From: Paramoeba atlantica
Lineage: Eukaryota; Protista; Discosea
Direction of reading: 5' to 3'
DNA length: 37,264 bases
Assembly (NCBI GenBank): GCA_977017575.1
Contig: CDRNVI010000096.1
Span: 1-37,264 of the forward strand
The notes under the pieces were generated by a model. It was not told the DNA's origin, did not search any database, and was given only the letters and a program-made list of their open reading frames with translations. Shown here piece after piece: positions 2,041 through 25,519 of this stretch. The position numbers were made by a program, and so were the translations under genes. Within the stretch, counting starts at the first letter, position 1; the number at the start of each line of letters is the position of its first letter.

Positions 2041-2053
2041 ATTGTAATAGTGT
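2041..2053 (+). repeat. Target-site duplication ATTGTAATAGTGT (5' copy; 3' copy at 3602-3614)
   Basis: Empty site: GCGCGCGT-ATTGTAATAGTGT-GGTGGAAAAA (17300, 21840, 26384, 27876, 29368, 30860, 32352, 33844, 35336, 36828). Filled site: the same 13-mer on both sides of the insert. Confidence 0.95.
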
Positions 2054-3550
2054 CTTGTTGACTCTTACCGCTATCTGGGAAACATTCAGGATTCAGGCGT
2101 TTCTTCGCCAGTAAAAGACCGCTTAAGGCTCACCTGGGCCGCATTTCGGAAGCTCAAGGGCATTTGGGACTCGCCACTGAGTGCATCAACAAAACTGCGT
2201 TTGTTTGATTGCCTCGTTTACCCAATCATGACCTTTGGTGCCGCTTCGCTTTCCATATCCAACAAAATGCTTCGGCAAACAGAAGTTGAGCTCAATATGA
2301 TGCGAAGATTTTGCTGTAATTGTGCTAAATTGGACGAGTTTGGACACTGCTACCCTATCGAGTCACTTTATTGCGGCACTCCTCGTTTCTCCACCGTACA
2401 TCGCGTTAGTCGGGCTAAAATTGTTGGTCACATTCTAAGGCACTCATTCATGTTTCGAGATCTTATCCAGTGGAAATGCAGCGATAGGAAACGAAATCTC
2501 TCACCAAGCGAAGCTTGCTTTCACGATCTGGACATTACCGAAGAACAAGCCCTCGTATACGCTCAGGATCGAGATCACTGGAAAAAGTTATGTGAAGATT
2601 TAAAGGTAGCACTCGAACCGCTTCCGGATTACGAAAGACTCTCTTCTCCTAGATGGAAAAGTAAACATGCCCACGCCTTGAAGCAAGATACGCCTTACGA
2701 TTTGCAATTTGTCGAAGAAAGTTCTGATCCTTTTCCATTAAAAGATGATGAGGTTCACTTCTATATTGATGGTTCAGTCCGTGCCTTGCGGGTGACAAAC
2801 GAGATCAGAGCAGGTGCTGGAATTGTTGTGCTTCAACGATGGACAACCGATAAATGTTTTTCCTTAACATTAGATGTTGATAGTGCCGAGCAAGCTGAGG
2901 CTGAATCTTTTCGAGAGGCGCTTAAAAGAATACCGGACGGAGCAAAAGATATCGTAGTACACACAGATTCGTTCTATGTGTGGAACTTCTTTCATCACGT
3001 TCGCATCCGGAGACGGGTAATAGGGTATGACCGCGTCGTCAACAGAAACATTCTACAAGATATAGATCATCAGGTGCGGAAACTAAAATCTCAGAATGTT
3101 AATTTGTATGTGTGCAAAGTTAAATCTCATAATGGGAACGAATATAACGACAAAGCTGATGTCTTGGCTCTTTCGGCGTCACGAAGGCCGTTAAAATCAC
3201 AAGAGGCAAAGAGGTTGAAGACGACAAAAGCTCCTTCTTCTTCTTCTTCTGACCCAATATCCTCGCCAGAAGCGACACTCATATTGCGCCCAAGAAGGAA
3301 TGTTGACACTATTTCATCCAAACGCAAGAATAACACTACTGCAAGTGGGGCTCTATCCAAAAAGGGTAGCTCACTGTCTGGAGAGCCTGGAGTGAAACCG
3401 TCTGAAAAAACGAATGCTATGATCCTGAGTAGGCCTGATGTCGGTAAAGAAAAAAGTTGCAAGGGAAATAGGGAGTCTGATAAGATCGTGGAAACAAAGG
3501 GAAAGAAGTCTCCCAAGAGAAAGAAGGCTTCACGAAAATTAGAACAGTAG
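2054..3550 (+). CDS. Truncated pol-like ORF: RT C-terminal motif and thumb, RNase H, basic tail (498 codons open; first ATG at 2228)
   Basis: Hand translation upstream of the 2201 ORF call gives LVDSYRYLGNIQDSGVSSPVKDRLRLTWAAFRKLKGIWDSPLSASTKLRLFDCLVYPIMTFG (non-LTR RT YLG motif and thumb), then GHILR and AQDRDHW. RNase H motifs: YIDGS (D at 2768), QAE (E 2897), HTDS (D 2966), KSH (H 3128), NDKAD (D 3158). Confidence 0.88.
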   Translation, partial: LVDSYRYLGNIQDSGVSSPVKDRLRLTWAAFRKLKGIWDSPLSASTKLRLFDCLVYPIMTFGAASLSISNKMLRQTEVELNMMRRFCCNCAKLDEFGHCYPIESLYCGTPRFSTVHRVSRAKIVGHILRHSFMFRDLIQWKCSDRKRNLSPSEACFHDLDITEEQALVYAQDRDHWKKLCEDLKVALEPLPDYERLSSPRWKSKHAHALKQDTPYDLQFVEESSDPFPLKDDEVHFYIDGSVRALRVTNEIRAGAGIVVLQRWTTDKCFSLTLDVDSAEQAEAESFREALKRIPDGAKDIVVHTDSFYVWNFFHHVRIRRRVIGYDRVVNRNILQDIDHQVRKLKSQNVNLYVCKVKSHNGNEYNDKADVLALSASRRPLKSQEAKRLKTTKAPSSSSSDPISSPEATLILRPRRNVDTISSKRKNNTTASGALSKKGSSLSGEPGVKPSEKTNAMILSRPDVGKEKSCKGNRESDKIVETKGKKSPKRKKASRKLEQ

Positions 3551-3558
3551 TATCTTTA

Positions 3559-3599
3559 ATCGGTTTTTAACCGATCTATTAGGATAGGATAGGATAGGA
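3559..3599 (+). other. Retroelement 3' end: stem-loop ATCGGTT-TTT-AACCGAT (3559-3575) plus (TAGGA)4 (3580-3599)
   Basis: Perfect 7-bp inverted repeat and four 5-nt repeats read directly; present in every copy (last repeat is CAGGA in copy 6). Confidence 0.85.
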
Positions 3600-4227
3600 G
3601 GATTGTAATAGTGTGGTGGAAAAACGTCGGTTTCACACGAAACTCGCATCCACCGTGCGACCCCATTCCGTGGAGAACGATCTTTGTTTTCTTCGATCGC
3701 ACTGATTCCGTTAGATGCACAGAGCGTGATTTCACGTGAATCGAACAATTCCGCGAGATGTTTTACTTGGGGCAAAGCAGGGCAGCACATGAACAATGAA
3801 AACAGGACGCGCAATGGCGCGGAACACCTTCCACGTGACACCTTCCGAAACGCGTTCTGCACAATCCAGGTATAAAACAACGAATTTCTTCGCCCGGCCG
3901 TTGCAAAGACCCACCCCTTACCGATAGATTTCGTAGCTCTGCTCTAAACGTGAACGCATCGTGCTCAACCTCTCTTCCCGACTATGTCATCGCAAAAATT
4001 GTATGTGTCACTTCTGGGCCGTTCGCATGGGCATGTGTTGGGCACACTCAAACCCCCATTTCATTCATCAATGCGACCTACGGTTGTGAATGTCGCCTTG
4101 CTTGGGGGGGGGGGGGCTGTAAGGATCGTTAAGCGAGCGAAATCGGGGAGTTTCCATTATGACATGAATTAGCAAGGTAAAGTGCACCGCTATGGACACA
4201 CAAAATTCGAGACACACCACGACGGAA

Positions 4228-4308
4228 GCGTCCATACCCAAGTGGTTAAGGGGCCTGACTTGAAATCAGGTGTGTTCTCACGCGCAGGTTCGAACCCTGC
4301 TGGGCGCG
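4228..4308 (+). tRNA. trnS(UGA): tRNA-Ser(UGA), copy 2, fully paired
   Basis: Acceptor GCGTCCA/TGGGCGC plus discriminator G; D arm CCC-AAGTGGTTAA-GGG; anticodon arm CCTGA-CTTGAAA-TCAGG; long variable arm TGTG-TTCT-CACG; T arm GCAGG-TTCGAAC-CCTGC; no encoded CCA. Confidence 0.96.
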
Positions 4309-4313
4309 TTTTT
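4309..4313 (+). terminator. RNA polymerase III terminator (T5); present after every tRNA copy
   Basis: TTTTT immediately follows the discriminator base. Confidence 0.85.
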
Positions 4314-5104
4314 GCGATTCTCTTCGTTCACAATCGTGTGGCCGCTTTTGGGCGCGCGCGAGAGACGCAACGTGAATCGCAGAAGCAATGGTACATTTTA
4401 GGGTATTTTCTTTGCTGAAATGAAGTCTTTTTGGCCTGTGTAGCAGATGACGTTTTGGCGGCAGAGACGGTGAATGGGTAGATGGCCGTGCGCGTGTCAA
4501 ATGTAAAAGCCCGAAAAGTGTACCGCTTTTTAGCGCATCATATCTTAAAATTCAAAATGACGTCAGATTTACCTCTTTCCGCCTGCACGGTGAAGGGGGG
4601 TTTTCAGATATCTCTGGACGCGACGTTTGCATGACTTCCGTGCATGGCGTGCGTCGATTGCGAAACGCCGAACCAGCAAGCTACACCTCCTGAGTGGTCG
4701 TGCTTCGCGCGATATTTTCTGTAGAGATAGAGTTTTTCCGTTAGTCAGTATGATTGCGAAACAAAACGTGGGTTTCGCCAGTCCACTTTTTGTCCGTTCT
4801 TCCCTGAATCAAATCTTAAACAATTTTAACCCTTTCTAATTGATGAGCGTTCTGATCGCTCGTGCTTTGCTCTGATATTTGCTTTGGGCACTCTTTTCAC
4901 ATGATTTCACTGATACTATAAGACTTCCCCTCTTCTAACGCAAGAATTTGTTGTCATCGGACATTCTTTTAGTCAAATCAATGCTTGATTGCACAAGCTT
5001 CCTGCATCTCAAGGGGGGGGGTTGTATTTCTCTACACCTCTTTCACTTTTCACCTGCTCTTCCAAGCAACAGGGTCACAGGGCGCGCGCGTATTGTAATA
5101 GTGT

Positions 5105-6601
5105 CTTGTTGACTCTTACCGCTATCTGGGAAACATTCAGGATTCAGGCGTTTCTTCGCCAGTAAAAGACCGCTTAAGGCTCACCTGGGCCGCATTTCGG
5201 AAGCTCAAGGGCATTTGGGACTCGCCACTGAGTGCATCAACAAAACTGCGTTTGTTTGATTGCCTCGTTTACCCAATCATGACCTTTGGTGCCGCTTCGC
5301 TTTCCATATCCAACAAAATGCTTCGGCAAACAGAAGTTGAGCTCAATATGATGCGAAGATTTTGCTGTAATTGTGCTAAATTGGACGAGTTTGGACACTG
5401 CTACCCTATCGAGTCACTTTATTGCGGCACTCCTCGTTTCTCCACCGTACATCGCGTTAGTCGGGCTAAAATTGTTGGTCACATTCTAAGGCACTCATTC
5501 ATGTTTCGAGATCTTATCCAGTGGAAATGCAGCGATAGGAAACGAAATCTCTCACCAAGCGAAGCTTGCTTTCACGATCTGGACATTACCGAAGAACAAG
5601 CCCTCGTATACGCTCAGGATCGAGATCACTGGAAAAAGTTATGTGAAGATTTAAAGGTAGCACTCGAACCGCTTCCGGATTACGAAAGACTCTCTTCTCC
5701 TAGATGGAAAAGTAAACATGCCCACGCCTTGAAGCAAGATACGCCTTACGATTTGCAATTTGTCGAAGAAAGTTCTGATCCTTTTCCATTAAAAGATGAT
5801 GAGGTTCACTTCTATATTGATGGTTCAGTCCGTGCCTTGCGGGTGACAAACGAGATCAGAGCAGGTGCTGGAATTGTTGTGCTTCAACGATGGACAACCG
5901 ATAAATGTTTTTCCTTAACATTAGATGTTGATAGTGCCGAGCAAGCTGAGGCTGAATCTTTTCGAGAGGCGCTTAAAAGAATACCGGACGGAGCAAAAGA
6001 TATCGTAGTACACACAGATTCGTTCTATGTGTGGAACTTCTTTCATCACGTTCGCATCCGGAGACGGGTAATAGGGTATGACCGCGTCGTCAACAGAAAC
6101 ATTCTACAAGATATAGATCATCAGGTGCGGAAACTAAAATCTCAGAATGTTAATTTGTATGTGTGCAAAGTTAAATCTCATAATGGGAACGAATATAACG
6201 ACAAAGCTGATGTCTTGGCTCTTTCGGCGTCACGAAGGCCGTTAAAATCACAAGAGGCAAAGAGGTTGAAGACGACAAAAGCTCCTTCTTCTTCTTCTTC
6301 TGACCCAATATCCTCGCCAGAAGCGACACTCATATTGCGCCCAAGAAGGAATGTTGACACTATTTCATCCAAACGCAAGAATAACACTACTGCAAGTGGG
6401 GCTCTATCCAAAAAGGGTAGCTCACTGTCTGGAGAGCCTGGAGTGAAACCGTCTGAAAAAACGAATGCTATGATCCTGAGTAGGCCTGATGTCGGTAAAG
6501 AAAAAAGTTGCAAGGGAAATAGGGAGTCTGATAAGATCGTGGAAACAAAGGGAAAGAAGTCTCCCAAGAGAAAGAAGGCTTCACGAAAATTAGAACAGTA
6601 G
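5105..6601 (+). CDS. Truncated RT thumb, RNase H, basic tail ORF, copy 2
   Basis: Translation identical to copy 1 (ORF track 5252-6601; frame open from the insertion start). Confidence 0.88.
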   Translation, partial: LVDSYRYLGNIQDSGVSSPVKDRLRLTWAAFRKLKGIWDSPLSASTKLRLFDCLVYPIMTFGAASLSISNKMLRQTEVELNMMRRFCCNCAKLDEFGHCYPIESLYCGTPRFSTVHRVSRAKIVGHILRHSFMFRDLIQWKCSDRKRNLSPSEACFHDLDITEEQALVYAQDRDHWKKLCEDLKVALEPLPDYERLSSPRWKSKHAHALKQDTPYDLQFVEESSDPFPLKDDEVHFYIDGSVRALRVTNEIRAGAGIVVLQRWTTDKCFSLTLDVDSAEQAEAESFREALKRIPDGAKDIVVHTDSFYVWNFFHHVRIRRRVIGYDRVVNRNILQDIDHQVRKLKSQNVNLYVCKVKSHNGNEYNDKADVLALSASRRPLKSQEAKRLKTTKAPSSSSSDPISSPEATLILRPRRNVDTISSKRKNNTTASGALSKKGSSLSGEPGVKPSEKTNAMILSRPDVGKEKSCKGNRESDKIVETKGKKSPKRKKASRKLEQ

Positions 6602-6652
6602 TATCTTTAATCGGTTTTTAACCGATCTATTAGGATAGGATAGGATAGGAGG
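5105..6652 (+). mobile_element. 5'-truncated non-LTR retrotransposon, copy 2
   Basis: Same ends and TSD as copy 1. Confidence 0.93.
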
Positions 6653-7279
6653 ATTGTAATAGTGTGGTGGAAAAACGTCGGTTTCACACGAAACTCGCAT
6701 CCACCGTGCGACCCCATTCCGTGGAGAACGATCTTTGTTTTCTTCGATCGCACTGATTCCGTTAGATGCACAGAGCGTGATTTCACGTGAATCGAACAAT
6801 TCCGCGAGATGTTTTACTTGGGGCAAAGCAGGGCAGCACATGAACAATGAAAACAGGACGCGCAATGGCGCGGAACACCTTCCACGTGACACCTTCCGAA
6901 ACGCGTTCTGCACAATCCAGGTATAAAACAACGAATTTCTTCGCCCGGCCGTTGCAAAGACCCACCCCTTACCGATAGATTTCGTAGCTCTGCTCTAAAC
7001 GTGAACGCATCGTGCTCAACCTCTCTTCCCGACTATGTCATCGCAAAAATTGTATGTGTCACTTCTGGGCCGTTCGCATGGGCATGTGTTGGGCACACTC
7101 AAACCCCCATTTCATTCATCAATGCGACCTACGGTTGTGAATGTCGCCTTGCTTGGGGGGGGGGGGGGCTGTAAGGATCGTTAAGCGAGCGAAATCGGGG
7201 AGTTTCCATTATGACATGAATTAGCAAGGTAAAGTGCACCGCTATGGACACACAAAATTCGAGACACACCACGACGGAA

Positions 7280-7360
7280 GCGTCCATACCCAAGTGGTTA
7301 AGGGGCCTGACTTGAAATCAGGTGTGTTCTCACGCGCAGGTTCGAACCCTGCTGGGCGCG
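7280..7360 (+). tRNA. trnS(UGA): tRNA-Ser(UGA), copy 3, fully paired
   Basis: Identical to copy 2. Confidence 0.96.
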
Positions 7361-8156
7361 TTTTTGCGATTCTCTTCGTTCACAATCGTGTGGCCGCTTT
7401 TGGGCGCGCGCGAGAGACGCAACGTGAATCGCAGAAGCAATGGTACATTTTAGGGTATTTTCTTTGCTGAAATGAAGTCTTTTTGGCCTGTGTAGCAGAT
7501 GACGTTTTGGCGGCAGAGACGGTGAATGGGTAGATGGCCGTGCGCGTGTCAAATGTAAAAGCCCGAAAAGTGTACCGCTTTTTAGCGCATCATATCTTAA
7601 AATTCAAAATGACGTCAGATTTACCTCTTTCCGCCTGCACGGTGAAGGGGGGTTTTCAGATATCTCTGGACGCGACGTTTGCATGACTTCCGTGCATGGC
7701 GTGCGTCGATTGCGAAACGCCGAACCAGCAAGCTACACCTCCTGAGTGGTCGTGCTTCGCGCGATATTTTCTGTAGAGATAGAGTTTTTCCGTTAGTCAG
7801 TATGATTGCGAAACAAAACGTGGGTTTCGCCAGTCCACTTTTTGTCCGTTCTTCCCTGAATCAAATCTTAAACAATTTTAACCCTTTCTAATTGATGAGC
7901 GTTCTGATCGCTCGTGCTTTGCTCTGATATTTGCTTTGGGCACTCTTTTCACATGATTTCACTGATACTATAAGACTTCCCCTCTTCTAACGCAAGAATT
8001 TGTTGTCATCGGACATTCTTTTAGTCAAATCAATGCTTGATTGCACAAGCTTCCTGCATCTCAAGGGGGGGGGTTGTATTTCTCTACACCTCTTTCACTT
8101 TTCACCTGCTCTTCCAAGCAACAGGGTCACAGGGCGCGCGCGTATTGTAATAGTGT

Positions 8157-9653
8157 CTTGTTGACTCTTACCGCTATCTGGGAAACATTCAGGATTCAGG
8201 CGTTTCTTCGCCAGTAAAAGACCGCTTAAGGCTCACCTGGGCCGCATTTCGGAAGCTCAAGGGCATTTGGGACTCGCCACTGAGTGCATCAACAAAACTG
8301 CGTTTGTTTGATTGCCTCGTTTACCCAATCATGACCTTTGGTGCCGCTTCGCTTTCCATATCCAACAAAATGCTTCGGCAAACAGAAGTTGAGCTCAATA
8401 TGATGCGAAGATTTTGCTGTAATTGTGCTAAATTGGACGAGTTTGGACACTGCTACCCTATCGAGTCACTTTATTGCGGCACTCCTCGTTTCTCCACCGT
8501 ACATCGCGTTAGTCGGGCTAAAATTGTTGGTCACATTCTAAGGCACTCATTCATGTTTCGAGATCTTATCCAGTGGAAATGCAGCGATAGGAAACGAAAT
8601 CTCTCACCAAGCGAAGCTTGCTTTCACGATCTGGACATTACCGAAGAACAAGCCCTCGTATACGCTCAGGATCGAGATCACTGGAAAAAGTTATGTGAAG
8701 ATTTAAAGGTAGCACTCGAACCGCTTCCGGATTACGAAAGACTCTCTTCTCCTAGATGGAAAAGTAAACATGCCCACGCCTTGAAGCAAGATACGCCTTA
8801 CGATTTGCAATTTGTCGAAGAAAGTTCTGATCCTTTTCCATTAAAAGATGATGAGGTTCACTTCTATATTGATGGTTCAGTCCGTGCCTTGCGGGTGACA
8901 AACGAGATCAGAGCAGGTGCTGGAATTGTTGTGCTTCAACGATGGACAACCGATAAATGTTTTTCCTTAACATTAGATGTTGATAGTGCCGAGCAAGCTG
9001 AGGCTGAATCTTTTCGAGAGGCGCTTAAAAGAATACCGGACGGAGCAAAAGATATCGTAGTACACACAGATTCGTTCTATGTGTGGAACTTCTTTCATCA
9101 CGTTCGCATCCGGAGACGGGTAATAGGGTATGACCGCGTCGTCAACAGAAACATTCTACAAGATATAGATCATCAGGTGCGGAAACTAAAATCTCAGAAT
9201 GTTAATTTGTATGTGTGCAAAGTTAAATCTCATAATGGGAACGAATATAACGACAAAGCTGATGTCTTGGCTCTTTCGGCGTCACGAAGGCCGTTAAAAT
9301 CACAAGAGGCAAAGAGGTTGAAGACGACAAAAGCTCCTTCTTCTTCTTCTTCTGACCCAATATCCTCGCCAGAAGCGACACTCATATTGCGCCCAAGAAG
9401 GAATGTTGACACTATTTCATCCAAACGCAAGAATAACACTACTGCAAGTGGGGCTCTATCCAAAAAGGGTAGCTCACTGTCTGGAGAGCCTGGAGTGAAA
9501 CCGTCTGAAAAAACGAATGCTATGATCCTGAGTAGGCCTGATGTCGGTAAAGAAAAAAGTTGCAAGGGAAATAGGGAGTCTGATAAGATCGTGGAAACAA
9601 AGGGAAAGAAGTCTCCCAAGAGAAAGAAGGCTTCACGAAAATTAGAACAGTAG
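8157..9653 (+). CDS. Truncated RT thumb, RNase H, basic tail ORF, copy 3
   Basis: Translation identical to copy 1 (ORF track 8304-9653). Confidence 0.88.
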   Translation, partial: LVDSYRYLGNIQDSGVSSPVKDRLRLTWAAFRKLKGIWDSPLSASTKLRLFDCLVYPIMTFGAASLSISNKMLRQTEVELNMMRRFCCNCAKLDEFGHCYPIESLYCGTPRFSTVHRVSRAKIVGHILRHSFMFRDLIQWKCSDRKRNLSPSEACFHDLDITEEQALVYAQDRDHWKKLCEDLKVALEPLPDYERLSSPRWKSKHAHALKQDTPYDLQFVEESSDPFPLKDDEVHFYIDGSVRALRVTNEIRAGAGIVVLQRWTTDKCFSLTLDVDSAEQAEAESFREALKRIPDGAKDIVVHTDSFYVWNFFHHVRIRRRVIGYDRVVNRNILQDIDHQVRKLKSQNVNLYVCKVKSHNGNEYNDKADVLALSASRRPLKSQEAKRLKTTKAPSSSSSDPISSPEATLILRPRRNVDTISSKRKNNTTASGALSKKGSSLSGEPGVKPSEKTNAMILSRPDVGKEKSCKGNRESDKIVETKGKKSPKRKKASRKLEQ

Positions 9654-9704
9654 TATCTTTAATCGGTTTTTAACCGATCTATTAGGATAGGATAGGATAG
9701 GAGG
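8157..9704 (+). mobile_element. 5'-truncated non-LTR retrotransposon, copy 3
   Basis: Same ends and TSD as copy 1. Confidence 0.93.
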
Positions 9705-10329
9705 ATTGTAATAGTGTGGTGGAAAAACGTCGGTTTCACACGAAACTCGCATCCACCGTGCGACCCCATTCCGTGGAGAACGATCTTTGTTTTCTTCGAT
9801 CGCACTGATTCCGTTAGATGCACAGAGCGTGATTTCACGTGAATCGAACAATTCCGCGAGATGTTTTACTTGGGGCAAAGCAGGGCAGCACATGAACAAT
9901 GAAAACAGGACGCGCAATGGCGCGGAACACCTTCCACGTGACACCTTCCGAAACGCGTTCTGCACAATCCAGGTATAAAACAACGAATTTCTTCGCCCGG
10001 CCGTTGCAAAGACCCACCCCTTACCGATAGATTTCGTAGCTCTGCTCTAAACGTGAACGCATCGTGCTCAACCTCTCTTCCCGACTATGTCATCGCAAAA
10101 ATTGTATGTGTCACTTCTGGGCCGTTCGCATGGGCATGTGTTGGGCACACTCAAACCCCCATTTCATTCATCAATGCGACCTACGGTTGTGAATGTCGCC
10201 TTGCTTGGGGGGGGGGGGCTGTAAGGATCGTTAAGCGAGCGAAATCGGGGAGTTTCCATTATGACATGAATTAGCAAGGTAAAGTGCACCGCTATGGACA
10301 CACAAAATTCGAGACACACCACGACGGAA

Positions 10330-10410
10330 GCGTCCATACCCAAGTGGTTAAGGGGCCTGACTTGAAATCAGGTGTGTTCTCACGCGCAGGTTCGAACCCT
10401 GCTGGGCGCG
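10330..10410 (+). tRNA. trnS(UGA): tRNA-Ser(UGA), copy 4, fully paired
   Basis: Identical to copy 2. Confidence 0.96.
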
Positions 10411-11206
10411 TTTTTGCGATTCTCTTCGTTCACAATCGTGTGGCCGCTTTTGGGCGCGCGCGAGAGACGCAACGTGAATCGCAGAAGCAATGGTACATTT
10501 TAGGGTATTTTCTTTGCTGAAATGAAGTCTTTTTGGCCTGTGTAGCAGATGACGTTTTGGCGGCAGAGACGGTGAATGGGTAGATGGCCGTGCGCGTGTC
10601 AAATGTAAAAGCCCGAAAAGTGTACCGCTTTTTAGCGCATCATATCTTAAAATTCAAAATGACGTCAGATTTACCTCTTTCCGCCTGCACGGTGAAGGGG
10701 GGTTTTCAGATATCTCTGGACGCGACGTTTGCATGACTTCCGTGCATGGCGTGCGTCGATTGCGAAACGCCGAACCAGCAAGCTACACCTCCTGAGTGGT
10801 CGTGCTTCGCGCGATATTTTCTGTAGAGATAGAGTTTTTCCGTTAGTCAGTATGATTGCGAAACAAAACGTGGGTTTCGCCAGTCCACTTTTTGTCCGTT
10901 CTTCCCTGAATCAAATCTTAAACAATTTTAACCCTTTCTAATTGATGAGCGTTCTGATCGCTCGTGCTTTGCTCTGATATTTGCTTTGGGCACTCTTTTC
11001 ACATGATTTCACTGATACTATAAGACTTCCCCTCTTCTAACGCAAGAATTTGTTGTCATCGGACATTCTTTTAGTCAAATCAATGCTTGATTGCACAAGC
11101 TTCCTGCATCTCAAGGGGGGGGGTTGTATTTCTCTACACCTCTTTCACTTTTCACCTGCTCTTCCAAGCAACAGGGTCACAGGGCGCGCGCGTATTGTAA
11201 TAGTGT

Positions 11207-12703: not shown

Positions 12704-12754
12704 TATCTTTAATCGGTTTTTAACCGATCTATTAGGATAGGATAGGATAGGAGG
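11207..12754 (+). mobile_element. 5'-truncated non-LTR retrotransposon, copy 4
   Basis: Same ends and TSD as copy 1. Confidence 0.93.
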
Positions 12755-13382
12755 ATTGTAATAGTGTGGTGGAAAAACGTCGGTTTCACACGAAACTCGC
12801 ATCCACCGTGCGACCCCATTCCGTGGAGAACGATCTTTGTTTTCTTCGATCGCACTGATTCCGTTAGATGCACAGAGCGTGATTTCACGTGAATCGAACA
12901 ATTCCGCGAGATGTTTTACTTGGGGCAAAGCAGGGCAGCACATGAACAATGAAAACAGGACGCGCAATGGCGCGGAACACCTTCCACGTGACACCTTCCG
13001 AAACGCGTTCTGCACAATCCAGGTATAAAACAACGAATTTCTTCGCCCGGCCGTTGCAAAGACCCACCCCTTACCGATAGATTTCGTAGCTCTGCTCTAA
13101 ACGTGAACGCATCGTGCTCAACCTCTCTTCCCGACTATGTCATCGCAAAAATTGTATGTGTCACTTCTGGGCCGTTCGCATGGGCATGTGTTGGGCACAC
13201 TCAAACCCCCATTTCATTCATCAATGCGACCTACGGTTGTGAATGTCGCCTTGCTTGGGGGGGGGGGGGGGCTGTAAGGATCGTTAAGCGAGCGAAATCG
13301 GGGAGTTTCCATTATGACATGAATTAGCAAGGTAAAGTGCACCGCTATGGACACACAAAATTCGAGACACACCACGACGGAA

Positions 13383-13463
13383 GCGTCCATACCCAAGTGG
13401 TTAAGGGGCCTGACTTGAAATCAGGTGTGTTCTCACGCGCAGGTTCGAACCCTGCTGGGCGCG
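13383..13463 (+). tRNA. trnS(UGA): tRNA-Ser(UGA), copy 5, fully paired
   Basis: Identical to copy 2. Confidence 0.96.
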
Positions 13464-14259
13464 TTTTTGCGATTCTCTTCGTTCACAATCGTGTGGCCGC
13501 TTTTGGGCGCGCGCGAGAGACGCAACGTGAATCGCAGAAGCAATGGTACATTTTAGGGTATTTTCTTTGCTGAAATGAAGTCTTTTTGGCCTGTGTAGCA
13601 GATGACGTTTTGGCGGCTGAGACGGTGAATGGGTAGATGGCCGTGCGCGTGTCAAATGTAAAAGCCCGAAAAGTGTACCGCTTTTTAGCGCATCATATCT
13701 TAAAATTCAAAATGACGTCAGATTTACCTCTTTCCGCCTGCACGGTGAAGGGGGGTTTTCAGATATCTCTGGACGCGACGTTTGCATGACTTCCGTGCAT
13801 GGCGTGCGTCGATTGCGAAACGCCGAACCAGCAAGCTACACCTCCTGAGTGGTCGTGCTTCGCGCGATATTTTCTGTAGAGATAGAGTTTTTCCGTTAGT
13901 CAGTATGATTGCGAAACAAAACGTGGGTTTCGCCAGTCCACTTTTTGTCCGTTCTTCCCTGAATCAAATCTTAAACAATTTTAACCCTTTCTAATTGATG
14001 AGCGTTCTGATCGCTCGTGCTTTGCTCTGATATTTGCTTTGGGCACTCTTTTCACATGATTTCACTGATACTATAAGACTTCCCCTCTTCTAACGCAAGA
14101 ATTTGTTGTCATCGGACATTCTTTTAGTCAAATCAATGCTTGATTGCACAAGCTTCCTGCATCTCAAGGGGGGGGGTTGTATTTCTCTACACCTCTTTCA
14201 CTTTTCACCTGCTCTTCCAAGCAACAGGGTCACAGGGCGCGCGCGTATTGTAATAGTGT

Positions 14260-15756: not shown

Positions 15757-15807
15757 TATCTTTAATCGGTTTTTAACCGATCTATTAGGATAGGATAGGA
15801 TAGGAGG
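14260..15807 (+). mobile_element. 5'-truncated non-LTR retrotransposon, copy 5
   Basis: Same ends and TSD as copy 1. Confidence 0.93.
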
Positions 15808-16435
15808 ATTGTAATAGTGTGGTGGAAAAACGTCGGTTTCACACGAAACTCGCATCCACCGTGCGACCCCATTCCGTGGAGAACGATCTTTGTTTTCTTC
15901 GATCGCACTGATTCCGTTAGATGCACAGAGCGTGATTTCACGTGAATCGAACAATTCCGCGAGATGTTTTACTTGGGGCAAAGCAGGGCAGCACATGAAC
16001 AATGAAAACAGGACGCGCAATGGCGCGGAACACCTTCCACGTGACACCTTCCGAAACGCGTTCTGCACAATCCAGGTATAAAACAACGAATTTCTTCGCC
16101 CGGCCGTTGCAAAGACCCACCCCTTACCGATAGATTTCGTAGCTCTGCTCTAAACGTGAACGCATCGTGCTCAACCTCTCTTCCCGACTATGTCATCGCA
16201 AAAATTGTATGTGTCACTTCTGGGCCGTTCGCATGGGCATGTGTTGGGCACACTCAAACCCCCATTTCATTCATCAATGCGACCTACGGTTGTGAATGTC
16301 GCCTTGCTTGGGGGGGGGGGGGGGCTGTAAGGATCGTTAAGCGAGCGAAATCGGGGAGTTTCCATTATGACATGAATTAGCAAGGTAAAGTGCACCGCTA
16401 TGGACACACAAAATTCGAGACACACCACGACGGAA

Positions 16436-16516
16436 GCGTCCATACCCAAGTGGTTAAGGGGCCTGACTTGAAATCAGGTGTGTTCTCACGCGCAGGTTCG
16501 AACCCTGCTGGGCGCG
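16436..16516 (+). tRNA. trnS(UGA): tRNA-Ser(UGA), copy 6, fully paired
   Basis: Identical to copy 2. Confidence 0.96.
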
Positions 16517-17925
16517 TTTTTGCGATTCTCTTCGTTCACAATCGTGTGGCCGCTTTTGGGCGCGCGCGAGAGACGCAACGTGAATCGCAGAAGCAATGGT
16601 ACATTTTAGGGTATTTTCTTTGCTGAAATGAAGTCTTTTTGGCCTGTGTAGCAGATGACGTTTTGGCGGCAGAGACGGTGAATGGGTAGATGGCCGTGCG
16701 CGTGTCAAATGTAAAAGCCCGAAAAGTGTACCGCTTTTTAGCGCATCATATCTTAAAATTCAAAATGACGTCAGATTTACCTCTTTCCGCCTGCACGGTG
16801 AAGGGGGGTTTTCAGATATCTCTGGACGGGACGTTTGCATGACTTCCGTGCATGGCGTGCGTCGATTGCGAAACGCCGAACCAGCAAGCTACACCTCCTG
16901 AGTGGTCGTGCTTCGCGCGATATTTTCTGTAGAGATAGAGTTTTTCCGTTAGTCAGTATGATTGCGAAACAAAACGTGGGTTTCGCCAGTCCACTTTTTG
17001 TCCGTTCTTCCCTGAATCAAATCTTAAACAATTTTAACCCTTTCTAATTGATGAGCGTTCTGATCGCTCGTGCTTTGCTCTGATATTTGCTTTGGGCACT
17101 CTTTTCACATGATTTCACTGATACTATAAGACTTCCCCTCTTCTAACGCAAGAATTTGTTGTCATCGGACATTCTTTTAGTCAAATCAATGCTTGATTGC
17201 ACAAGCTTCCTGCATCTCAAGGGGGGGGGTTGTATTTCTCTACACCTCTTTCACTTTTCACCTGCTCTTCCAAGCAACAGGGTCACAGGGCGCGCGCGTA
17301 TTGTAATAGTGTGGTGGAAAAACGTCGGTTTCACACGAAACTCGCATCCACCGTGCGACCCCATTCCGTGGAGAACGATCTTTGTTTTCTTCGATCGCAC
17401 TGATTCCGTTAGATGCACAGAGCGTGATTTCACGTGAATCGAACAATTCCGCGAGATGTTTTACTTGGGGCAAAGCAGGGCAGCACATGAACAATGAAAA
17501 CAGGACGCGCAATGGCGCGGAACACCTTCCACGTGACACCTTCCGAAACGCGTTCTGCACAATCCAGGTATAAAACAACGAATTTCTTCGCCCGGCCGTT
17601 GCAAAGACCCACCCCTTACCGATAGATTTCGTAGCTCTGCTCTAAACGTGAACGCATCGTGCTCAACCTCTCTTCCCGACTATGTCATCGCAAAAATTGT
17701 ATGTGTCACTTCTGGGCCGTTCGCATGGGCATGTGTTGGGCACACTCAAACCCCCATTGCATTCATCAATGCGACCTACGGTTGTGAATGTCGCCTTGCT
17801 TGGGGGGGGGGGGGCTGTAAGGATCGTTAAGCGAGCGAAATCGGGGAGTTTCCATTATGACATGAATTAGCAAGGTAAAGTGCACCGCTATGGACACACA
17901 AAATTCGAGACACACCACGACGGAA

Positions 17926-18006
17926 GCGTCCATACCCAAGTGGTTAAGGGGCCTGACTTGAAATCAGGTGTGTTCTCAGGCGCAGGTTCGAACCCTGCTG
18001 GGCGCG
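17926..18006 (+). tRNA. trnS(UGA): tRNA-Ser(UGA), copy 7, variable-arm variant
   Basis: C>G at 17979 (CACG to CAGG) breaks one G-C pair of the variable-arm stem. Confidence 0.88.
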
Positions 18007-18802
18007 TTTTTGCGATTCTCTTCGTTCACAATCGTGTGGCCGCTTTTGGGCGCGCGCGAGAGACGCAACGTGAATCGCAGAAGCAATGGTACATTTTAGG
18101 GTATTTTCTTTGCTGAAATGAAGTCTTTTTGGCCTGTGTAGCAGATGACGTTTTGGCGGCAGAGACGGTGAATGGGTAGATGGCCGTGCGCGTGTCAAAT
18201 GTAAAAGCCCGAAAAGTGTACCGCTTTTTAGCGCATCATATCTTAAAATTCAAAATGACGTCAGATTTACCTCTTTCCGCCTGCACGGTGAAGGGGGGTT
18301 TTCAGATATCTCTGGACGGGACGTTTGCATGACTTCCGTGCATGGCGTGCGTCGATTGCGAAACGCCGAACCAGCAAGCTACACCTCCTGAGTGGTCGTG
18401 CTTCGCGCGATATTTTCTGTAGAGATAGAGTTTTTCCGTTAGTCAGTATGATTGCGAAACAAAACGTGGGTTTCGCCAGTCCACTTTTTGTCCGTTCTTC
18501 CCTGAATCAAATCTTAAACAATTTTAACCCTTTCTAATTGATGAGCGTTCTGATCGCTCGTGCTTTGCTCTGATATTTGCTTTGGGCACTCTTTTCACAT
18601 GATTTCACTGATACTATAAGACTTCCCCTCTTCTAACGCAAGAATTTGTTGTCATCGGACATTCTTTTAGTCAAATCAATGCTTGATTGCACAAGCTTCC
18701 TGCATCTCAAGGGGGGGGGTTGTATTTCTCTACACCTCTTTCACTTTTCACCTGCTCTTCCAAGCAACAGGGTCACAGGGCGCGCGCGTATTGTAATAGT
18801 GT

Positions 18803-20299
18803 CTTGTTGACTCTTACCGCTATCTGGGAAACATTCAGGATTCAGGCGTTTCTTCGCCAGTAAAAGACCGCTTAAGGCTCACCTGGGCCGCATTTCGGAA
18901 GCTCAAGGGCATTTGGGACTCGCCACTGAGTGCATCAACAAAACTGCGTTTGTTTGATTGCCTCGTTTACCCAATCATGACCTTTGGTGCCGCTTCGCTT
19001 TCCATATCCAACAAAATGCTTCGGCAAACAGAAGTTGAGCTCAATATGATGCGAAGATTTTGCTGTAATTGTGCTAAATTGGACGAGTTTGGACACTGCT
19101 ACCCTATCGAGTCACTTTATTGCGGCACTCCTCGTTTCTCCACCGTACATCGCGTTAGTCGGGCTAAAATTGTTGGTCACATTCTAAGGCACTCATTCAT
19201 GTTTCGAGATCTTATCCAGTGGAAATGCAGCGATAGGAAACGAAATCTCTCACCAAGCGAAGCTTGCTTTCACGATCTGGACATTACCGAAGAACAAGCC
19301 CTCGTATACGCTCAGGATCGAGATCACTGGAAAAAGTTATGTGAAGATTTAAAGGTAGCACTCGAACCGCTTCCGGATTACGAAAGACTCTCTTCTCCTA
19401 GATGGAAAAGTAAACATGCCCACGCCTTGAAGCAAGATACGCCTTACGATTTGCAATTTGTCGAAGAAAGTTCTGATCCTTTTCCATTAAAAGATGATGA
19501 GGTTCACTTCTATATTGATGGTTCAGTCCGTGCCTTGCGGGTGACAAACGAGATCAGAGCAGGTGCTGGAATTGTTGTGCTTCAACGATGGACAACCGAT
19601 AAATGTTTTTCCTTAACATTAGATGTTGATAGTGCCGAGCAAGCTGAGGCTGAATCTTTTCGAGAGGCGCTTAAAAGAATACCGGACGGAGCAAAAGATA
19701 TCGTAGTACACACAGATTCGTTCTATGTGTGGAACTTCTTTCATCACGTTCGCATCCGGAGACGGGTAATAGGGTATGACCGCGTCGTCAACAGAAACAT
19801 TCTACAAGATATAGATCATCAGGTGCGGAAACTAAAATCTCAGAATGTTAATTTGTATGTGTGCAAAGTTAAATCTCATAATGGGAACGAATATAACGAC
19901 AAAGCTGATGTCTTGGCTCTTTCGGCGTCACGAAGGCCGTTAAAATCACAAGAGGCAAAGAGGTTGAAGACGACAAAAGCTCCTTCTTCTTCTTCTTCTG
20001 ACCCAATATCCTCGCCAGAAGCGACACTCATATTGCGCCCAAGAAGGAATGTTGACACTATTTCATCCAAACGCAAGAATAACACTACTGCAAGTGGGGC
20101 TCTATCCAAAAAGGGTAGCTCACTGTCTGGAGAGCCTGGAGTGAAACCGTCTGAAAAAACGAATGCTATGATCCTGAGTAGGCCTGATGTCGGTAAAGAA
20201 AAAAGTTGCAAGGGAAATAGGGAGTCTGATAAGATCGTGGAAACAAAGGGAAAGAAGTCTCCCAAGAGAAAGAAGGCTTCACGAAAATTAGAACAGTAG
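18803..20299 (+). CDS. Truncated RT thumb, RNase H, basic tail ORF, copy 6
   Basis: Translation identical to copy 1 (ORF track 18950-20299). Confidence 0.88.
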   Translation, partial: LVDSYRYLGNIQDSGVSSPVKDRLRLTWAAFRKLKGIWDSPLSASTKLRLFDCLVYPIMTFGAASLSISNKMLRQTEVELNMMRRFCCNCAKLDEFGHCYPIESLYCGTPRFSTVHRVSRAKIVGHILRHSFMFRDLIQWKCSDRKRNLSPSEACFHDLDITEEQALVYAQDRDHWKKLCEDLKVALEPLPDYERLSSPRWKSKHAHALKQDTPYDLQFVEESSDPFPLKDDEVHFYIDGSVRALRVTNEIRAGAGIVVLQRWTTDKCFSLTLDVDSAEQAEAESFREALKRIPDGAKDIVVHTDSFYVWNFFHHVRIRRRVIGYDRVVNRNILQDIDHQVRKLKSQNVNLYVCKVKSHNGNEYNDKADVLALSASRRPLKSQEAKRLKTTKAPSSSSSDPISSPEATLILRPRRNVDTISSKRKNNTTASGALSKKGSSLSGEPGVKPSEKTNAMILSRPDVGKEKSCKGNRESDKIVETKGKKSPKRKKASRKLEQ

Positions 20300-20350
20300 T
20301 ATCTTTAATCGGTTTTTAACCGATCTATTAGGATAGGATAGGACAGGAGG
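18803..20350 (+). mobile_element. 5'-truncated non-LTR retrotransposon, copy 6
   Basis: Same ends and TSD; T>C at 20344 in the last TAGGA repeat. Confidence 0.93.
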
Positions 20351-20975
20351 ATTGTAATAGTGTGGTGGAAAAACGTCGGTTTCACACGAAACTCGCATCC
20401 ACCGTGCGACCCCATTCCGTGGAGAACGATCTTTGTTTTCTTCGATCGCACTGATTCCGTTAGATGCACAGAGCGTGATTTCACGTGAATCGAACAATTC
20501 CGCGAGATGTTTTACTTGGGGCAAAGCAGGGCAGCACATGAACAATGAAAACAGGACGCGCAATGGCGCGGAACACCTTCCACGTGACACCTTCCGAAAC
20601 GCGTTCTGCACAATCCAGGTATAAAACAACGAATTTCTTCGCCCGGCCGTTGCAAAGACCCACCCCTTACCGATAGATTTCGTAGCTCTGCTCTAAACGT
20701 GAACGCATCGTGCTCAACCTCTCTTCCCGACTATGTCATCGCAAAAATTGTATGTGTCACTTCTGGGCCGTTCGCATGGGCATGTGTTGGGCACACTCAA
20801 ACCCCCATTGCATTCATCAATGCGACCTACGGTTGTGAATGTCGCCTTGCTTGGGGGGGGGGGGCTGTAAGGATCGTTAAGCGAGCGAAATCGGGGAGTT
20901 TCCATTATGACATGAATTAGCAAGGTAAAGTGCACCGCTATGGACACACAAAATTCGAGACACACCACGACGGAA

Positions 20976-21056
20976 GCGTCCATACCCAAGTGGTTAAGGG
21001 GCCTGACTTGAAATCAGGTGTGTTCTCAGGCGCAGGTTCGAACCCTGCTGGGCGCG
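20976..21056 (+). tRNA. trnS(UGA): tRNA-Ser(UGA), copy 8, variable-arm variant
   Basis: Same CAGG variant as copy 7. Confidence 0.88.
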
Positions 21057-22466
21057 TTTTTGCGATTCTCTTCGTTCACAATCGTGTGGCCGCTTTTGGG
21101 CGCGCGCGAGAGACGCAACGTGAATCGCAGAAGCAATGGTACATTTTAGGGTATTTTCTTTGCTGAAATGAAGTCTTTTTGGCCTGTGTAGCAGATGACG
21201 TTTTGGCGGCAGAGACGGTGAATGGGTAGATGGCCGTGCGCGTGTCAAATGTAAAAGCCCGAAAAGTGTACCGCTTTTTAGCGCATCATATCTTAAAATT
21301 CAAAATGACGTCAGATTTACCTCTTTCCGCCTGCACGGTGAAGGGGGGTTTTCAGATATCTCTGGACGGGACGTTTGCATGACTTCCGTGCATGGCGTGC
21401 GTCGATTGCGAAACGCCGAACCAGCAAGCTACACCTCCTGAGTGGTCGTGCTTCGCGCGATATTTTCTGTAGAGATAGAGTTTTTCCGTTAGTCAGTATG
21501 ATTGCGAAACAAAACGTGGGTTTCGCCAGTCCACTTTTTGTCCGTTCTTCCCTGAATCAAATCTTAAACAATTTTAACCCTTTCTAATTGATGAGCGTTC
21601 TGATCGCTCGTGCTTTGCTCTGATATTTGCTTTGGGCACTCTTTTCACATGATTTCACTGATACTATAAGACTTCCCCTCTTCTAACGCAAGAATTTGTT
21701 GTCATCGGACATTCTTTTAGTCAAATCAATGCTTGATTGCACAAGCTTCCTGCATCTCAAGGGGGGGGGTTGTATTTCTCTACACCTCTTTCACTTTTCA
21801 CCTGCTCTTCCAAGCAACAGGGTCACAGGGCGCGCGCGTATTGTAATAGTGTGGTGGAAAAACGTCGGTTTCACACGAAACTCGCATCCACCGTGCGACC
21901 CCATTCCGTGGAGAACGATCTTTGTTTTCTTCGATCGCACTGATTCCGTTAGATGCACAGAGCGTGATTTCACGTGAATCGAACAATTCCGCGAGATGTT
22001 TTACTTGGGGCAAAGCAGGGCAGCACATGAACAATGAAAACAGGACGCGCAATGGCGCGGAACACCTTCCACGTGACACCTTCCGAAACGCGTTCTGCAC
22101 AATCCAGGTATAAAACAACGAATTTCTTCGCCCGGCCGTTGCAAAGACCCACCCCTTACCGATAGATTTCGTAGCTCTGCTCTAAACGTGAACGCATCGT
22201 GCTCAACCTCTCTTCCCGACTATGTCATCGCAAAAATTGTATGTGTCACTTCTGGGCCGTTCGCATGGGCATGTGTTGGGCACACTCAAACCCCCATTGC
22301 ATTCATCAATGCGACCTACGGTTGTGAATGTCGCCTTGCTTGGGGGGGGGGGGGGCTGTAAGGATCGTTAAGCGAGCGAAATCGGGGAGTTTCCATTATG
22401 ACATGAATTAGCAAGGTAAAGTGCACCGCTATGGACACACAAAATTCGAGACACACCACGACGGAA

Positions 22467-22547
22467 GCGTCCATACCCAAGTGGTTAAGGGGCCTGACTT
22501 GAAATCAGGTGTGTTCTCAGGCGCAGGTTCGAACCCTGCTGGGCGCG
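22467..22547 (+). tRNA. trnS(UGA): tRNA-Ser(UGA), copy 9, variable-arm variant
   Basis: Same CAGG variant as copy 7. Confidence 0.88.
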
Positions 22548-23343
22548 TTTTTGCGATTCTCTTCGTTCACAATCGTGTGGCCGCTTTTGGGCGCGCGCGA
22601 GAGACGCAACGTGAATCGCAGAAGCAATGGTACATTTTAGGGTATTTTCTTTGCTGAAATGAAGTCTTTTTGGCCTGTGTAGCAGATGACGTTTTGGCGG
22701 CAGAGACGGTGAATGGGTAGATGGCCGTGCGCGTGTCAAATGTAAAAGCCCGAAAAGTGTACCGCTTTTTAGCGCATCATATCTTAAAATTCAAAATGAC
22801 GTCAGATTTACCTCTTTCCGCCTGCACGGTGAAGGGGGGTTTTCAGATATCTCTGGACGGGACGTTTGCATGACTTCCGTGCATGGCGTGCGTCGATTGC
22901 GAAACGCCGAACCAGCAAGCTACACCTCCTGAGTGGTCGTGCTTCGCGCGATATTTTCTGTAGAGATAGAGTTTTTCCGTTAGTCAGTATGATTGCGAAA
23001 CAAAACGTGGGTTTCGCCAGTCCACTTTTTGTCCGTTCTTCCCTGAATCAAATCTTAAACAATTTTAACCCTTTCTAATTGATGAGCGTTCTGATCGCTC
23101 GTGCTTTGCTCTGATATTTGCTTTGGGTACTCTTTTCACATGATTTCACTGATACTATAAGACTTCCCCTCTTCTAACGCAAGAATTTGTTGTCATCGGA
23201 CATTCTTTTAGTCAAATCAATGCTTGATTGCACAAGCTTCCTGCATCTCAAGGGGGGGGGTTGTATTTCTCTACACCTCTTTCACTTTTCACCTGCTCTT
23301 CCAAGCAACAGGGTCACAGGGCGCGCGCGTATTGTAATAGTGT

Positions 23344-24840
23344 CTTGTTGACTCTTACCGCTATCTGGGAAACATTCAGGATTCAGGCGTTTCTTCGCCA
23401 GTAAAAGACCGCTTAAGGCTCACCTGGGCCGCATTTCGGAAGCTCAAGGGCATTTGGGACTCGCCACTGAGTGCATCAACAAAACTGCGTTTGTTTGATT
23501 GCCTCGTTTACCCAATCATGACCTTTGGTGCCGCTTCGCTTTCCATATCCAACAAAATGCTTCGGCAAACAGAAGTTGAGCTCAATATGATGCGAAGATT
23601 TTGCTGTAATTGTGCTAAATTGGACGAGTTTGGACACTGCTACCCTATCGAGTCACTTTATTGCGGCACTCCTCGTTTCTCCACCGTACATCGCGTTAGT
23701 CGGGCTAAAATTGTTGGTCACATTCTAAGGCACTCATTCATGTTTCGAGATCTTATCCAGTGGAAATGCAGCGATAGGAAACGAAATCTCTCACCAAGCG
23801 AAGCTTGCTTTCACGATCTGGACATTACCGAAGAACAAGCCCTCGTATACGCTCAGGATCGAGATCACTGGAAAAAGTTATGTGAAGATTTAAAGGTAGC
23901 ACTCGAACCGCTTCCGGATTACGAAAGACTCTCTTCTCCTAGATGGAAAAGTAAACATGCCCACGCCTTGAAGCAAGATACGCCTTACGATTTGCAATTT
24001 GTCGAAGAAAGTTCTGATCCTTTTCCATTAAAAGATGATGAGGTTCACTTCTATATTGATGGTTCAGTCCGTGCCTTGCGGGTGACAAACGAGATCAGAG
24101 CAGGTGCTGGAATTGTTGTGCTTCAACGATGGACAACCGATAAATGTTTTTCCTTAACATTAGATATTGATAGTGCCGAGCAAGCTGAGGCTGAATCTTT
24201 TCGAGAGGCGCTTAAAAGAATACCGGACGGAGCAAAAGATATCGTAGTACACACAGATTCGTTCTATGTGTGGAACTTCTTTCATCACGTTCGCATCCGG
24301 AGACGGGTAATAGGGTATGACCGCGTCGTCAACAGAAACATTCTACAAGATATAGATCATCAGGTGCGGAAACTAAAATCTCAGAATGTTAATTTGTATG
24401 TGTGCAAAGTTAAATCTCATAATGGGAACGAATATAACGACAAAGCTGATGTCTTGGCTCTTTCGGCGTCACGAAGGCCGTTAAAATCACAAGAGGCAAA
24501 GAGGTTGAAGACGACAAAAGCTCCTTCTTCTTCTTCTTCTGACCCAATATCCTCGCCAGAAGCGACACTCATATTGCGCCCAAGAAGGAATGTTGACACT
24601 ATTTCATCCAAACGCAAGAATAACACTACTGCAAGTGGGGCTCTATCCAAAAAGGGTAGCTCACTGTCTGGAGAGCCTGGAGTGAAACCGTCTGAAAAAA
24701 CGAATGCTATGATCCTGAGTAGGCCTGATGTCGGTAAAGAAAAAAGTTGCAAGGGAAATAGGGAGTCTGATAAGATCGTGGAAACAAAGGGAAAGAAGTC
24801 TCCCAAGAGAAAGAAGGCTTCACGAAAATTAGAACAGTAG
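23344..24840 (+). CDS. Truncated RT thumb, RNase H, basic tail ORF, copy 7
   Basis: As copy 1 except one V>I change (G>A at 24166) inside the RNase H domain (ORF track 23491-24840). Confidence 0.88.
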   Translation, partial: LVDSYRYLGNIQDSGVSSPVKDRLRLTWAAFRKLKGIWDSPLSASTKLRLFDCLVYPIMTFGAASLSISNKMLRQTEVELNMMRRFCCNCAKLDEFGHCYPIESLYCGTPRFSTVHRVSRAKIVGHILRHSFMFRDLIQWKCSDRKRNLSPSEACFHDLDITEEQALVYAQDRDHWKKLCEDLKVALEPLPDYERLSSPRWKSKHAHALKQDTPYDLQFVEESSDPFPLKDDEVHFYIDGSVRALRVTNEIRAGAGIVVLQRWTTDKCFSLTLDIDSAEQAEAESFREALKRIPDGAKDIVVHTDSFYVWNFFHHVRIRRRVIGYDRVVNRNILQDIDHQVRKLKSQNVNLYVCKVKSHNGNEYNDKADVLALSASRRPLKSQEAKRLKTTKAPSSSSSDPISSPEATLILRPRRNVDTISSKRKNNTTASGALSKKGSSLSGEPGVKPSEKTNAMILSRPDVGKEKSCKGNRESDKIVETKGKKSPKRKKASRKLEQ

Positions 24841-24891
24841 TATCTTTAATCGGTTTTTAACCGATCTATTAGGATAGGATAGGATAGGAGG
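23344..24891 (+). mobile_element. 5'-truncated non-LTR retrotransposon, copy 7
   Basis: Same ends and TSD as copy 1. Confidence 0.93.
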
Positions 24892-25519
24892 ATTGTAATA
24901 GTGTGGTGGAAAAACGTCGGTTTCACACGAAACTCGCATCCACCGTGCGACCCCATTCCGTGGAGAACGATCTTTGTTTTCTTCGATCGCACTGATTCCG
25001 TTAGATGCACAGAGCGTGATTTCACGTGAATCGAACAATTCCGCGAGATGTTTTACTTGGGGCAAAGCAGGGCAGCACATGAACAATGAAAACAGGACGC
25101 GCAATGGCGCGGAACACCTTCCACGTGACACCTTCCGAAACGCGTTCTGCACAATCCAGGTATAAAACAACGAATTTCTTCGCCCGGCCGTTGCAAAGAC
25201 CCACCCCTTACCGATAGATTTCGTAGCTCTGCTCTAAACGTGAACGCATCGTGCTCAACCTCTCTTCCCGACTATGTCATCGCAAAAATTGTATGTGTCA
25301 CTTCTGGGCCGTTCGCATGGGCATGTGTTGGGCACACTCAAACCCCCATTTCATTCATCAATGCGACCTACGGTTGTGAATGTCGCCTTGCTTGGGGGGG
25401 GGGGGGGGCTGTAAGGATCGTTAAGCGAGCGAAATCGGGGAGTTTCCATTATGACATGAATTAGCAAGGTAAAGTGCACCGCTATGGACACACAAAATTC
25501 GAGACACACCACGACGGAA

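Follow-up and report, generated by a model that had tools for sequence, protein, structure and literature searches.

What brings the same broken retrotransposon to the same nucleotide in one unit after another of a tandem gene array? The question is raised by contig CDRNVI010000096.1 of Paramoeba atlantica, which was analysed over its whole length (37,264 bp, hereafter the window; contig C96 of the assembly) and which is an array of units encoding the transfer RNA (tRNA) for serine, tRNA-Ser(UGA), some with a 5'-truncated long interspersed nuclear element (LINE) in the spacer (filled units) and some without it (empty units). We looked at the inserts, at their relatives elsewhere in the genome and at the flanks on which they reside, and conclude that a single truncated LINE insertion has very probably been multiplied by unequal exchange or gene conversion of the array, and not by transposition.

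Inserts and empty sites in the window

The anatomy of the inserts and of their site is directly visible in the sequence. The target motif ATTGTAATAGTGT, scanned as a 13-mer across the window, occurs as seven pairs that flank an insert and as ten single copies without insert, which confirms an earlier sequence-only reading of this DNA that had described seven inserts with a common start, tail and target-site duplication (TSD) beside ten empty sites. Each complete insert opens with CTTGTTGAC, closes with GGATAGGAGG and is exactly 1548 bp long, and the first base, the (TAGGA)4GG tail and the 13-bp TSD are alike in all seven, among which only 2 positions vary in total. An eighth, partial insert at 1-532 is rich in small indels, which are probably sequencing errors of the contig end. 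The insertion site is located ~780 bp downstream of the tRNA. As the parent element also has a T before the position at which the insert starts, the junction is ambiguous by one base; the motif does bracket all seven inserts as that reading had it, but the length of 13 bp it gave for the TSD has to be widened to 12 or 13 bp, and microhomology at the 5' junction amounts to only 1 nt.

The reading frame of the insert starts with LVDSYRYLG and runs for 498 codons to a stop, and an in-frame TAG is present in the spacer two codons 5' of the junction. RNase_H (7e-14) was the sole significant Pfam domain of this open reading frame (ORF), with no reverse transcriptase (RT) core and no endonuclease, in agreement with the earlier statement that the frame from VDSYRYLG lacks both. 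A 7-bp stem-loop before the tail was rejected as a candidate feature, its stability being no better than that of shuffled sequence (z = -0.2).

The parent element and its independent insertions

Genome-wide analyses covered the 45.7-Mb assembly of 248 contigs, to which the C numbers refer. The insert matched, at 98-100% identity, the array copies on C106 and C56 and, outside the arrays, sequences on C7, C43, C87 (twice), C29, C1 and C49. These dispersed copies are 99.3-99.6% identical to the array insert over the shared 1.5 kb, and the parent family is thereby observed directly. A full-length parent was sought in the same genome and found on C43, where an uninterrupted single ORF of 1483 aa encodes the Pfam domains Exo_endo_phos (residues 191-443, 4e-10), RVT_1 (732-994, 5e-28) and RNase_H (near 1218-1360). 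The YADD box of this ORF (residue 922) lies N-terminal to residue 986, where the array copy begins, so that this copy has neither endonuclease nor RT catalytic core. The C43 copy ends in the same 3' untranslated region (UTR) and (TAGGA)n tail as the array insert, and its leader consists of ~30 copies of the 18-bp repeat TTTTTATAAAGAACACAC (L033:6005-6607, -); the leader repeats are far fewer in the other copies, so their number differs among insertions. The family has no long terminal repeats, a simple-repeat 3' tail and an apurinic/apyrimidinic endonuclease (APE) N-terminal to the RT, and, judged from this order of APE, RT and RNase H domains, is an APE-type LINE. In database searches the closest proteins came from metagenomes; they are 35-74% identical and have the same domain order. 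Stops interrupt the other long copies at codon 115 (C87) and codon 228 (C29/C49).

The dispersed copies represent at least five independent events with five different 5' ends at unrelated target sites, as judged with C43 as the reference, the C7 copy being itself truncated. The 5' ends of C43, C87 and C29/C49 lie within the 18-bp-repeat leader, that of C1 ~100 nt further in and that of C7 ~950 nt further in. The C43 insertion has the long leader and the TSD ACAAGAGAA; the C29 and C49 insertions have common flanks, a short leader and the TSD ATTGAGTTTTTA; and the C7 insertion has the TSD AATCACCCTTT and 11 extra bases at its 5' junction. The two C87 copies share their flanks and hence derive from one event that was duplicated later. 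Dispersed TSDs are 9-12 bp long, and with the array event four events give 9, 11, 12 and 13 bp; all TSDs of the family start with A directly after the tail, and the (TAGGA)n tails vary in length and composition across the dispersed events. The variable 5' truncation per event on which the sequence-only reading had built therefore holds in this genome, and the contrast between these differing insertions and the uniform array inserts is a direct observation.

Several of the dispersed copies are doubled or interrupted. The C29 and C49 copies are each ~98% identical to the C43 copy, with the same insertion and flanks present twice, and the C87 copies lie 29 kb apart and differ at 1/1500 positions. 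These doubled copies are segmental duplications or uncollapsed haplotypes, a point that bears also on the relation of C56 to C96 and C106. Extra DNA of ~3.5 kb, 0.6 kb, 0.5 kb and 1.1 kb splits the dispersed copies C87b, C29, C1 and C49, respectively (L035, L036, L037, L038), and in C49 no more than a few bases separate the interruption from the truncation point of the array copy. Rearranged fragments of a sister LINE subfamily, 96% identical, were found inside a ~5.2 kb tandem repeat (C65:1-10000, L044; also L045 and L046) and possibly represent another example of LINE pieces that were multiplied within a larger repeat.

Filled and empty sites in the genome

Filled 5' junctions numbered 14 genome-wide (seven on C96, six on C106 and one on C56), each array 3' junction lying exactly 1561 bp 3' of its 5' junction, and 39 exact empty sites were present on the same three contigs. 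Insertions at the array site with other 5' ends or TSDs, which would have pointed to independent events, were looked for and none was found, the geometry of the junctions being identical in 14/14. Two paralogous tRNA-Ser(UGA) arrays, C57:79-28874 (-) and C72:60452-85449 (+), with units of ~1480 bp and spacers ~5% diverged, contain 36 regularly spaced one-mismatch sites of the variant ACTGTAATAGTGT, and 36/36 are empty. Matches to this tRNA-Ser totalled 117 in the genome, with an irregular cluster on C87.

Taken together, C56, C96 and C106 have 14 filled and 40 empty sites, i.e. about a quarter are filled. Their distribution is uneven, with 1 filled against 21 empty sites on C56 (20 exact and one edge variant) and 13 or 14 filled among ~32 on C106 and C96. 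Should the private variants of individual units be real, the overlap of C106 with C96 would be ~2 units at most, which leaves 13-14 filled units there plus the one on C56. No second copy of the DNA that flanks the C56 array on the right was found in the assembly, which fits a collapsed allele and a separate locus alike.

Four substitutions were specific to the array, being shared by all its copies and missing from the four dispersed copies that were aligned (C7, C43 and two of C87). The array copy differs from those four at 6-11/1500 positions, and array copies differ from one another by a mean of 0.33 per 1548.

Proposed spread of the filled unit

We aligned 26 complete units from C96, C106 and C56, 13 filled and 13 empty. 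Ten of the filled units, half of them on C96 and half on C106, have practically one haplotype and form uninterrupted runs, and runs of at least five identical filled units were seen. One flank variant goes with the filled state: at unit position 2885, at a distance of 460 bp downstream from the site, 11/13 filled units have T as against 0/13 empty ones (Fisher p = 2e-5, although the units are not independent), and this linkage indicates that whole filled units were copied. At the edge of a run the alternating empty and filled units (16436-25519) have 394G in common and 54G in part, a sharing that fits duplication in a two-unit register. Unless polishing errors account for them, the 2885G flanks on which the insert is also found (C96:17926 and C56:430627) point to exchange or conversion in which filled and empty units took part, and two empty units of C106 have the same haplotype as C96:25520. 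The claim of the sequence-only reading that one insertion was copied by unequal crossover or gene conversion thus finds support both in the contrast with independent events and in the linked 2885T.

From these patterns we propose that one event of target-primed reverse transcription would have placed a copy of a young APE/RT/RNase H LINE in the spacer of one tRNA-Ser(UGA) unit, retaining no more than the 3'-terminal 1548 bp of the ~4.5-5.1 kb element and making the 13-bp TSD. Such a fragment, without endonuclease and without RT catalytic core, is unable to move alone. The filled unit would then have been multiplied by the homology-driven turnover of the array through unequal exchange, between sister chromatids or between homologues, in registers of one and two units, while filled and empty units also underwent some exchange or conversion with each other, and the outcome would be the at least 14 assembled copies on three contigs. 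The recombination mechanism (crossover or gene conversion) and the direction of change (spread or loss) are what we infer here.

Weighing of alternative explanations

Four public runs of one study carry this DNA and are stored as short contigs. Both insert and spacer were present in 4/4 samples, and the word depth of insert relative to spacer was ~0.15-0.33 in the four runs, which is a weak hint only as depth is not copy number. None of the short contigs spans a unit; one X3 contig crosses an empty site, and one X4 contig has 30 letters across a filled 5' junction, one below the spanning criterion.

It is improbable, in our judgement, that the array of inserts is an assembly artefact in which one or a few filled units were over-replicated by a long-read assembler within a near-identical array. 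Such an origin would suit a contig that contains repeats only and has many indels in its first ~1.2 kb, as well as ten filled units on C96 and C106 that are identical in sequence, and the short contigs give no unit order by which to judge it. However, filled units are seen on three contigs and on no fewer than four flank or insert haplotypes that can be told apart, private variants (236T, 771A, 662T and two insert substitutions) tag individual units, and the above depth ratio, with the same reservation, exceeds the expectation for one filled unit.

Repeated independent insertion, either of a site-specific element or from a truncated master RNA with a fixed 5' end into the same spacer site, is very unlikely. 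There is precedent in the site-specific LINEs of tandem RNA genes, R1 and R2 in ribosomal DNA (rDNA) and Dewa in the tRNA-Leu spacer of zebrafish (the latter as cited in PMC3706591), and the uniform A at the start of the family's TSDs could be taken in the same sense. Nevertheless, the dispersed copies reside in unrelated sequences, the other 75 copies of the site are empty, and 36 of these belong to the paralogous arrays and so count against site-specific re-insertion. The tail is of constant length in the array and variable among independent events, the inserts have no spacer-derived 5' extension of the kind expected from a read-through master transcript, and microhomology at the 5' junction is limited to 1 nt. 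A site-specific LINE of tandem RNA genes, a group to which R1, R2, Dewa, Keno and Mutsu belong, should have most or all of its copies at one target and independent insertions with different 5' ends at that target, whereas the copies on C43, C87, C29/C49, C1 and C7 lie elsewhere with different TSDs and 14/14 junction pairs of the array are identical. Target specificity like that of R2 or Dewa is ruled out by the empty paralogous sites together with the unrelated dispersed targets. That the filled unit is ancestral and the empty units arose by precise deletion between the 13-bp repeats is scarcely credible, for although direct repeats can mediate deletion and the majority of units are empty, the insert has all hallmarks of the 3' end of a retrotransposed LINE, is nearly identical to dispersed copies of which one has an uninterrupted ORF, and is missing from two diverged paralogous arrays that have only the single-copy site.

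Some points weigh against the multiplication of one insertion by the array itself. The short contigs of the public runs break at every repeat variant and are without power on the order or number of units. C96 and C106 are mostly array and the start of C96 is error-rich, and some units could be products of over-replication by the assembler. The filled runs of C106 and C96 could in part be the same DNA and have been counted twice, and the occurrence of the insert on at least four flank haplotypes calls for additional exchange or conversion events or for polishing errors. Finally, C56 with its 1 filled and 21 empty sites and C106 plus C96 with their 13-14 filled sites could be alleles, paralogous loci or one locus. 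We regard it as possible, though rather unlikely, that they are two alleles or cell-line variants of one locus; were this true, the dead LINE would be a natural marker of multi-unit unequal exchange within the life of the strain, and exchange rates and registers in a tRNA array would become measurable directly. More speculatively, filled units might be favoured in exchange or the intact RNase H frame might be expressed.

Features of the tRNA-Ser(UGA) array

The window has 17 tRNA-Ser(UGA) genes as predicted by ARAGORN, all on the + strand, and the coordinates of its features are collected in Table 1. Spacing from tRNA to tRNA is 1490-1492 bp in empty units and 3050-3053 bp in filled units, with a unit size of 1492 bp and ~3052 bp, respectively, ~47% G+C and one tRNA-Ser per unit. 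Unit borders were set by tRNA anchors, the period being above the 500-bp limit of Tandem Repeats Finder. An Rfam scan of the unit gave no family besides tRNAs, and spacer ORFs did not exceed 106 aa. The array is homogeneous, with ~1.5 substitutions per 1483 bp of flank among the 26 complete units aligned.

Table 1. Position of array, tRNA genes, inserts and target sites in the window.
Feature	Position	Strand	Basis or remark
Tandem array of tRNA-Ser(UGA) units	1..37264	+	ARAGORN, Rfam tRNA matches; window is the entire contig C96, array only
tRNA-Ser(UGA) gene starts	1176, 4228, 7280, 10330, 13383, 16436, 17926, 20976, 22467	+	ARAGORN
tRNA-Ser(UGA) gene starts, continued	25520, 27012, 28504, 29996, 31488, 32980, 34472, 35964	+	ARAGORN
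Partial insert (eighth), 3' end only	1..532	+	clipped by contig start
Upstream TSD copy ATTGTAATAGTGT, insert 1	2041..2053	+	13-mer motif scan
Insert 1, 1548 bp, 5'-truncated LINE	2054..3601	+	parent ORF residues 986-1483, 3' UTR and tail
Open frame, insert 1	2054..3550	+	498 codons and stop
RNase H domain of truncated ORF	2750..3178	+	fragment residues 233-375; Pfam PF00075, E 7e-14
Element tail (TAGGA)4 then GG	3580..3601	+	all array copies alike except one substitution
Downstream TSD copy, insert 1	3602..3614	+	13-mer motif scan
Insert 2, 1548 bp	5105..6652	+	insert alignment
Insert 3, 1548 bp	8157..9704	+	insert alignment
Insert 4, 1548 bp	11207..12754	+	insert alignment
Insert 5, 1548 bp	14260..15807	+	insert alignment
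Insert 6, 1548 bp	18803..20350	+	private T>C in tail; flank haplotype 54G/394G/2885G
Insert 7, 1548 bp	23344..24891	+	private G>A at insert position 823
Empty site, single 13-mer	17300..17312	+	motif scan
Empty site, single 13-mer	21840..21852	+	motif scan
Empty site, first in run of eight	26384..26396	+	motif scan
Other seven empty sites of the run (starts)	27876, 29368, 30860, 32352, 33844, 35336, 36828	+	motif scan

A poly-G tract ~130 bp upstream of each tRNA (e.g. 4101-4113 and 26887-26901) ranges from ~10 to 16 bases across units and is the source of most differences in unit length; this variation is either true slippage or long-read homopolymer error. The tRNA-Ser genes starting at 27012, 28504, 29996, 31488, 32980 and 34472 (window 27012-36044) have C>G at tRNA position 70; the change disrupts a pair of the T stem and lowers the Rfam score from ~61 to 51 bits, and the same variant was found in three empty units of C56. 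The intact C is kept at this position in the empty units of C106 (11078 and 12567) and in those of the window at 16436, 20976 and 25520, so that the impaired allele has no general tie to the empty state. The first part of the window (1-1260) has many single-base indels, and its tRNA, at 1176, has a length of 83 nt that includes two extra bases; this region is probably an unpolished contig end and not a diverged unit.

The C56 array stops inside a unit, at unit position 1148 (L049, C56:436223-440552), and this last, truncated unit is the most diverged one read, with 7 substitutions in 1148 bp. A diverged and truncated terminal unit is usual at the edges of homogenised arrays. An 89-bp stretch just past the end of the C56 array recurs ~1.3 kb deeper in the flank.

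Comparison with known systems

The APE-type LINEs that have a C-terminal RNase H include the I, Tad1, LOA and ingi-like architectures, and the present family is like them in its single ORF of APE, RT and RNase H, its simple-repeat tail, its variable 5' truncation and its TSDs of 9-13 bp. In its location it is like Dewa, a LINE reported to target the spacer of the tRNA-Leu array in zebrafish (as cited in PMC3706591), as both are non-LTR elements in the spacer of a tandem tRNA array, but the element described here has dispersed copies at unrelated sites and all other copies of its target are empty. The array itself is comparable to those of Entamoeba, another protist in which tRNA genes are present as long homogenised tandem arrays (PMC2652664). 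The likeness is one of organisation, as the Entamoeba units contain up to 5 tRNAs with short tandem repeats and are AT-rich, whereas here there is one tRNA-Ser per 1.49 kb at ~47% G+C.

The closest parallel is that of truncated and degenerate R2 in rDNA. An identical 5' truncation is the standard mark of one target-primed reverse transcription event for R2, as in the truncation profiles of Drosophila simulans (PMC2637433). In the rDNA of Bacillus rossius, a stick insect, every truncated variant of R2 is present in multiple copies and a degenerate R2 increases in number without transposition, and the authors credited unequal recombination for both (PMC4370867). The array of Paramoeba atlantica resembles these cases in that a dead LINE resides in a tandem RNA-gene array, a common truncation points to one event and unequal recombination would account for its copies. 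It differs in that the host is a tRNA-Ser array of a protist transcribed by RNA polymerase III (Pol III), the element is not site-specific and has an APE endonuclease while R2 uses a restriction-like endonuclease, and a single insertion event is present in ~90 units.

The process is one already known from rDNA, here at work in a Pol III tRNA array and on a LINE that is not site-specific, and the case reveals no new mechanism. It provides a very clean natural example, as one genome contains the filled and the empty allele, the parent element and, as controls, independent insertions, and it would mean that a dead fragment of a transposon can come to occupy about one in four units of an array family without transposing. 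The insert may serve as a marker for checks of array assembly, for typing of isolates and for estimates of exchange rate. It also indicates that this organism homogenises its tRNA arrays by copying units in the same way as happens in rDNA.

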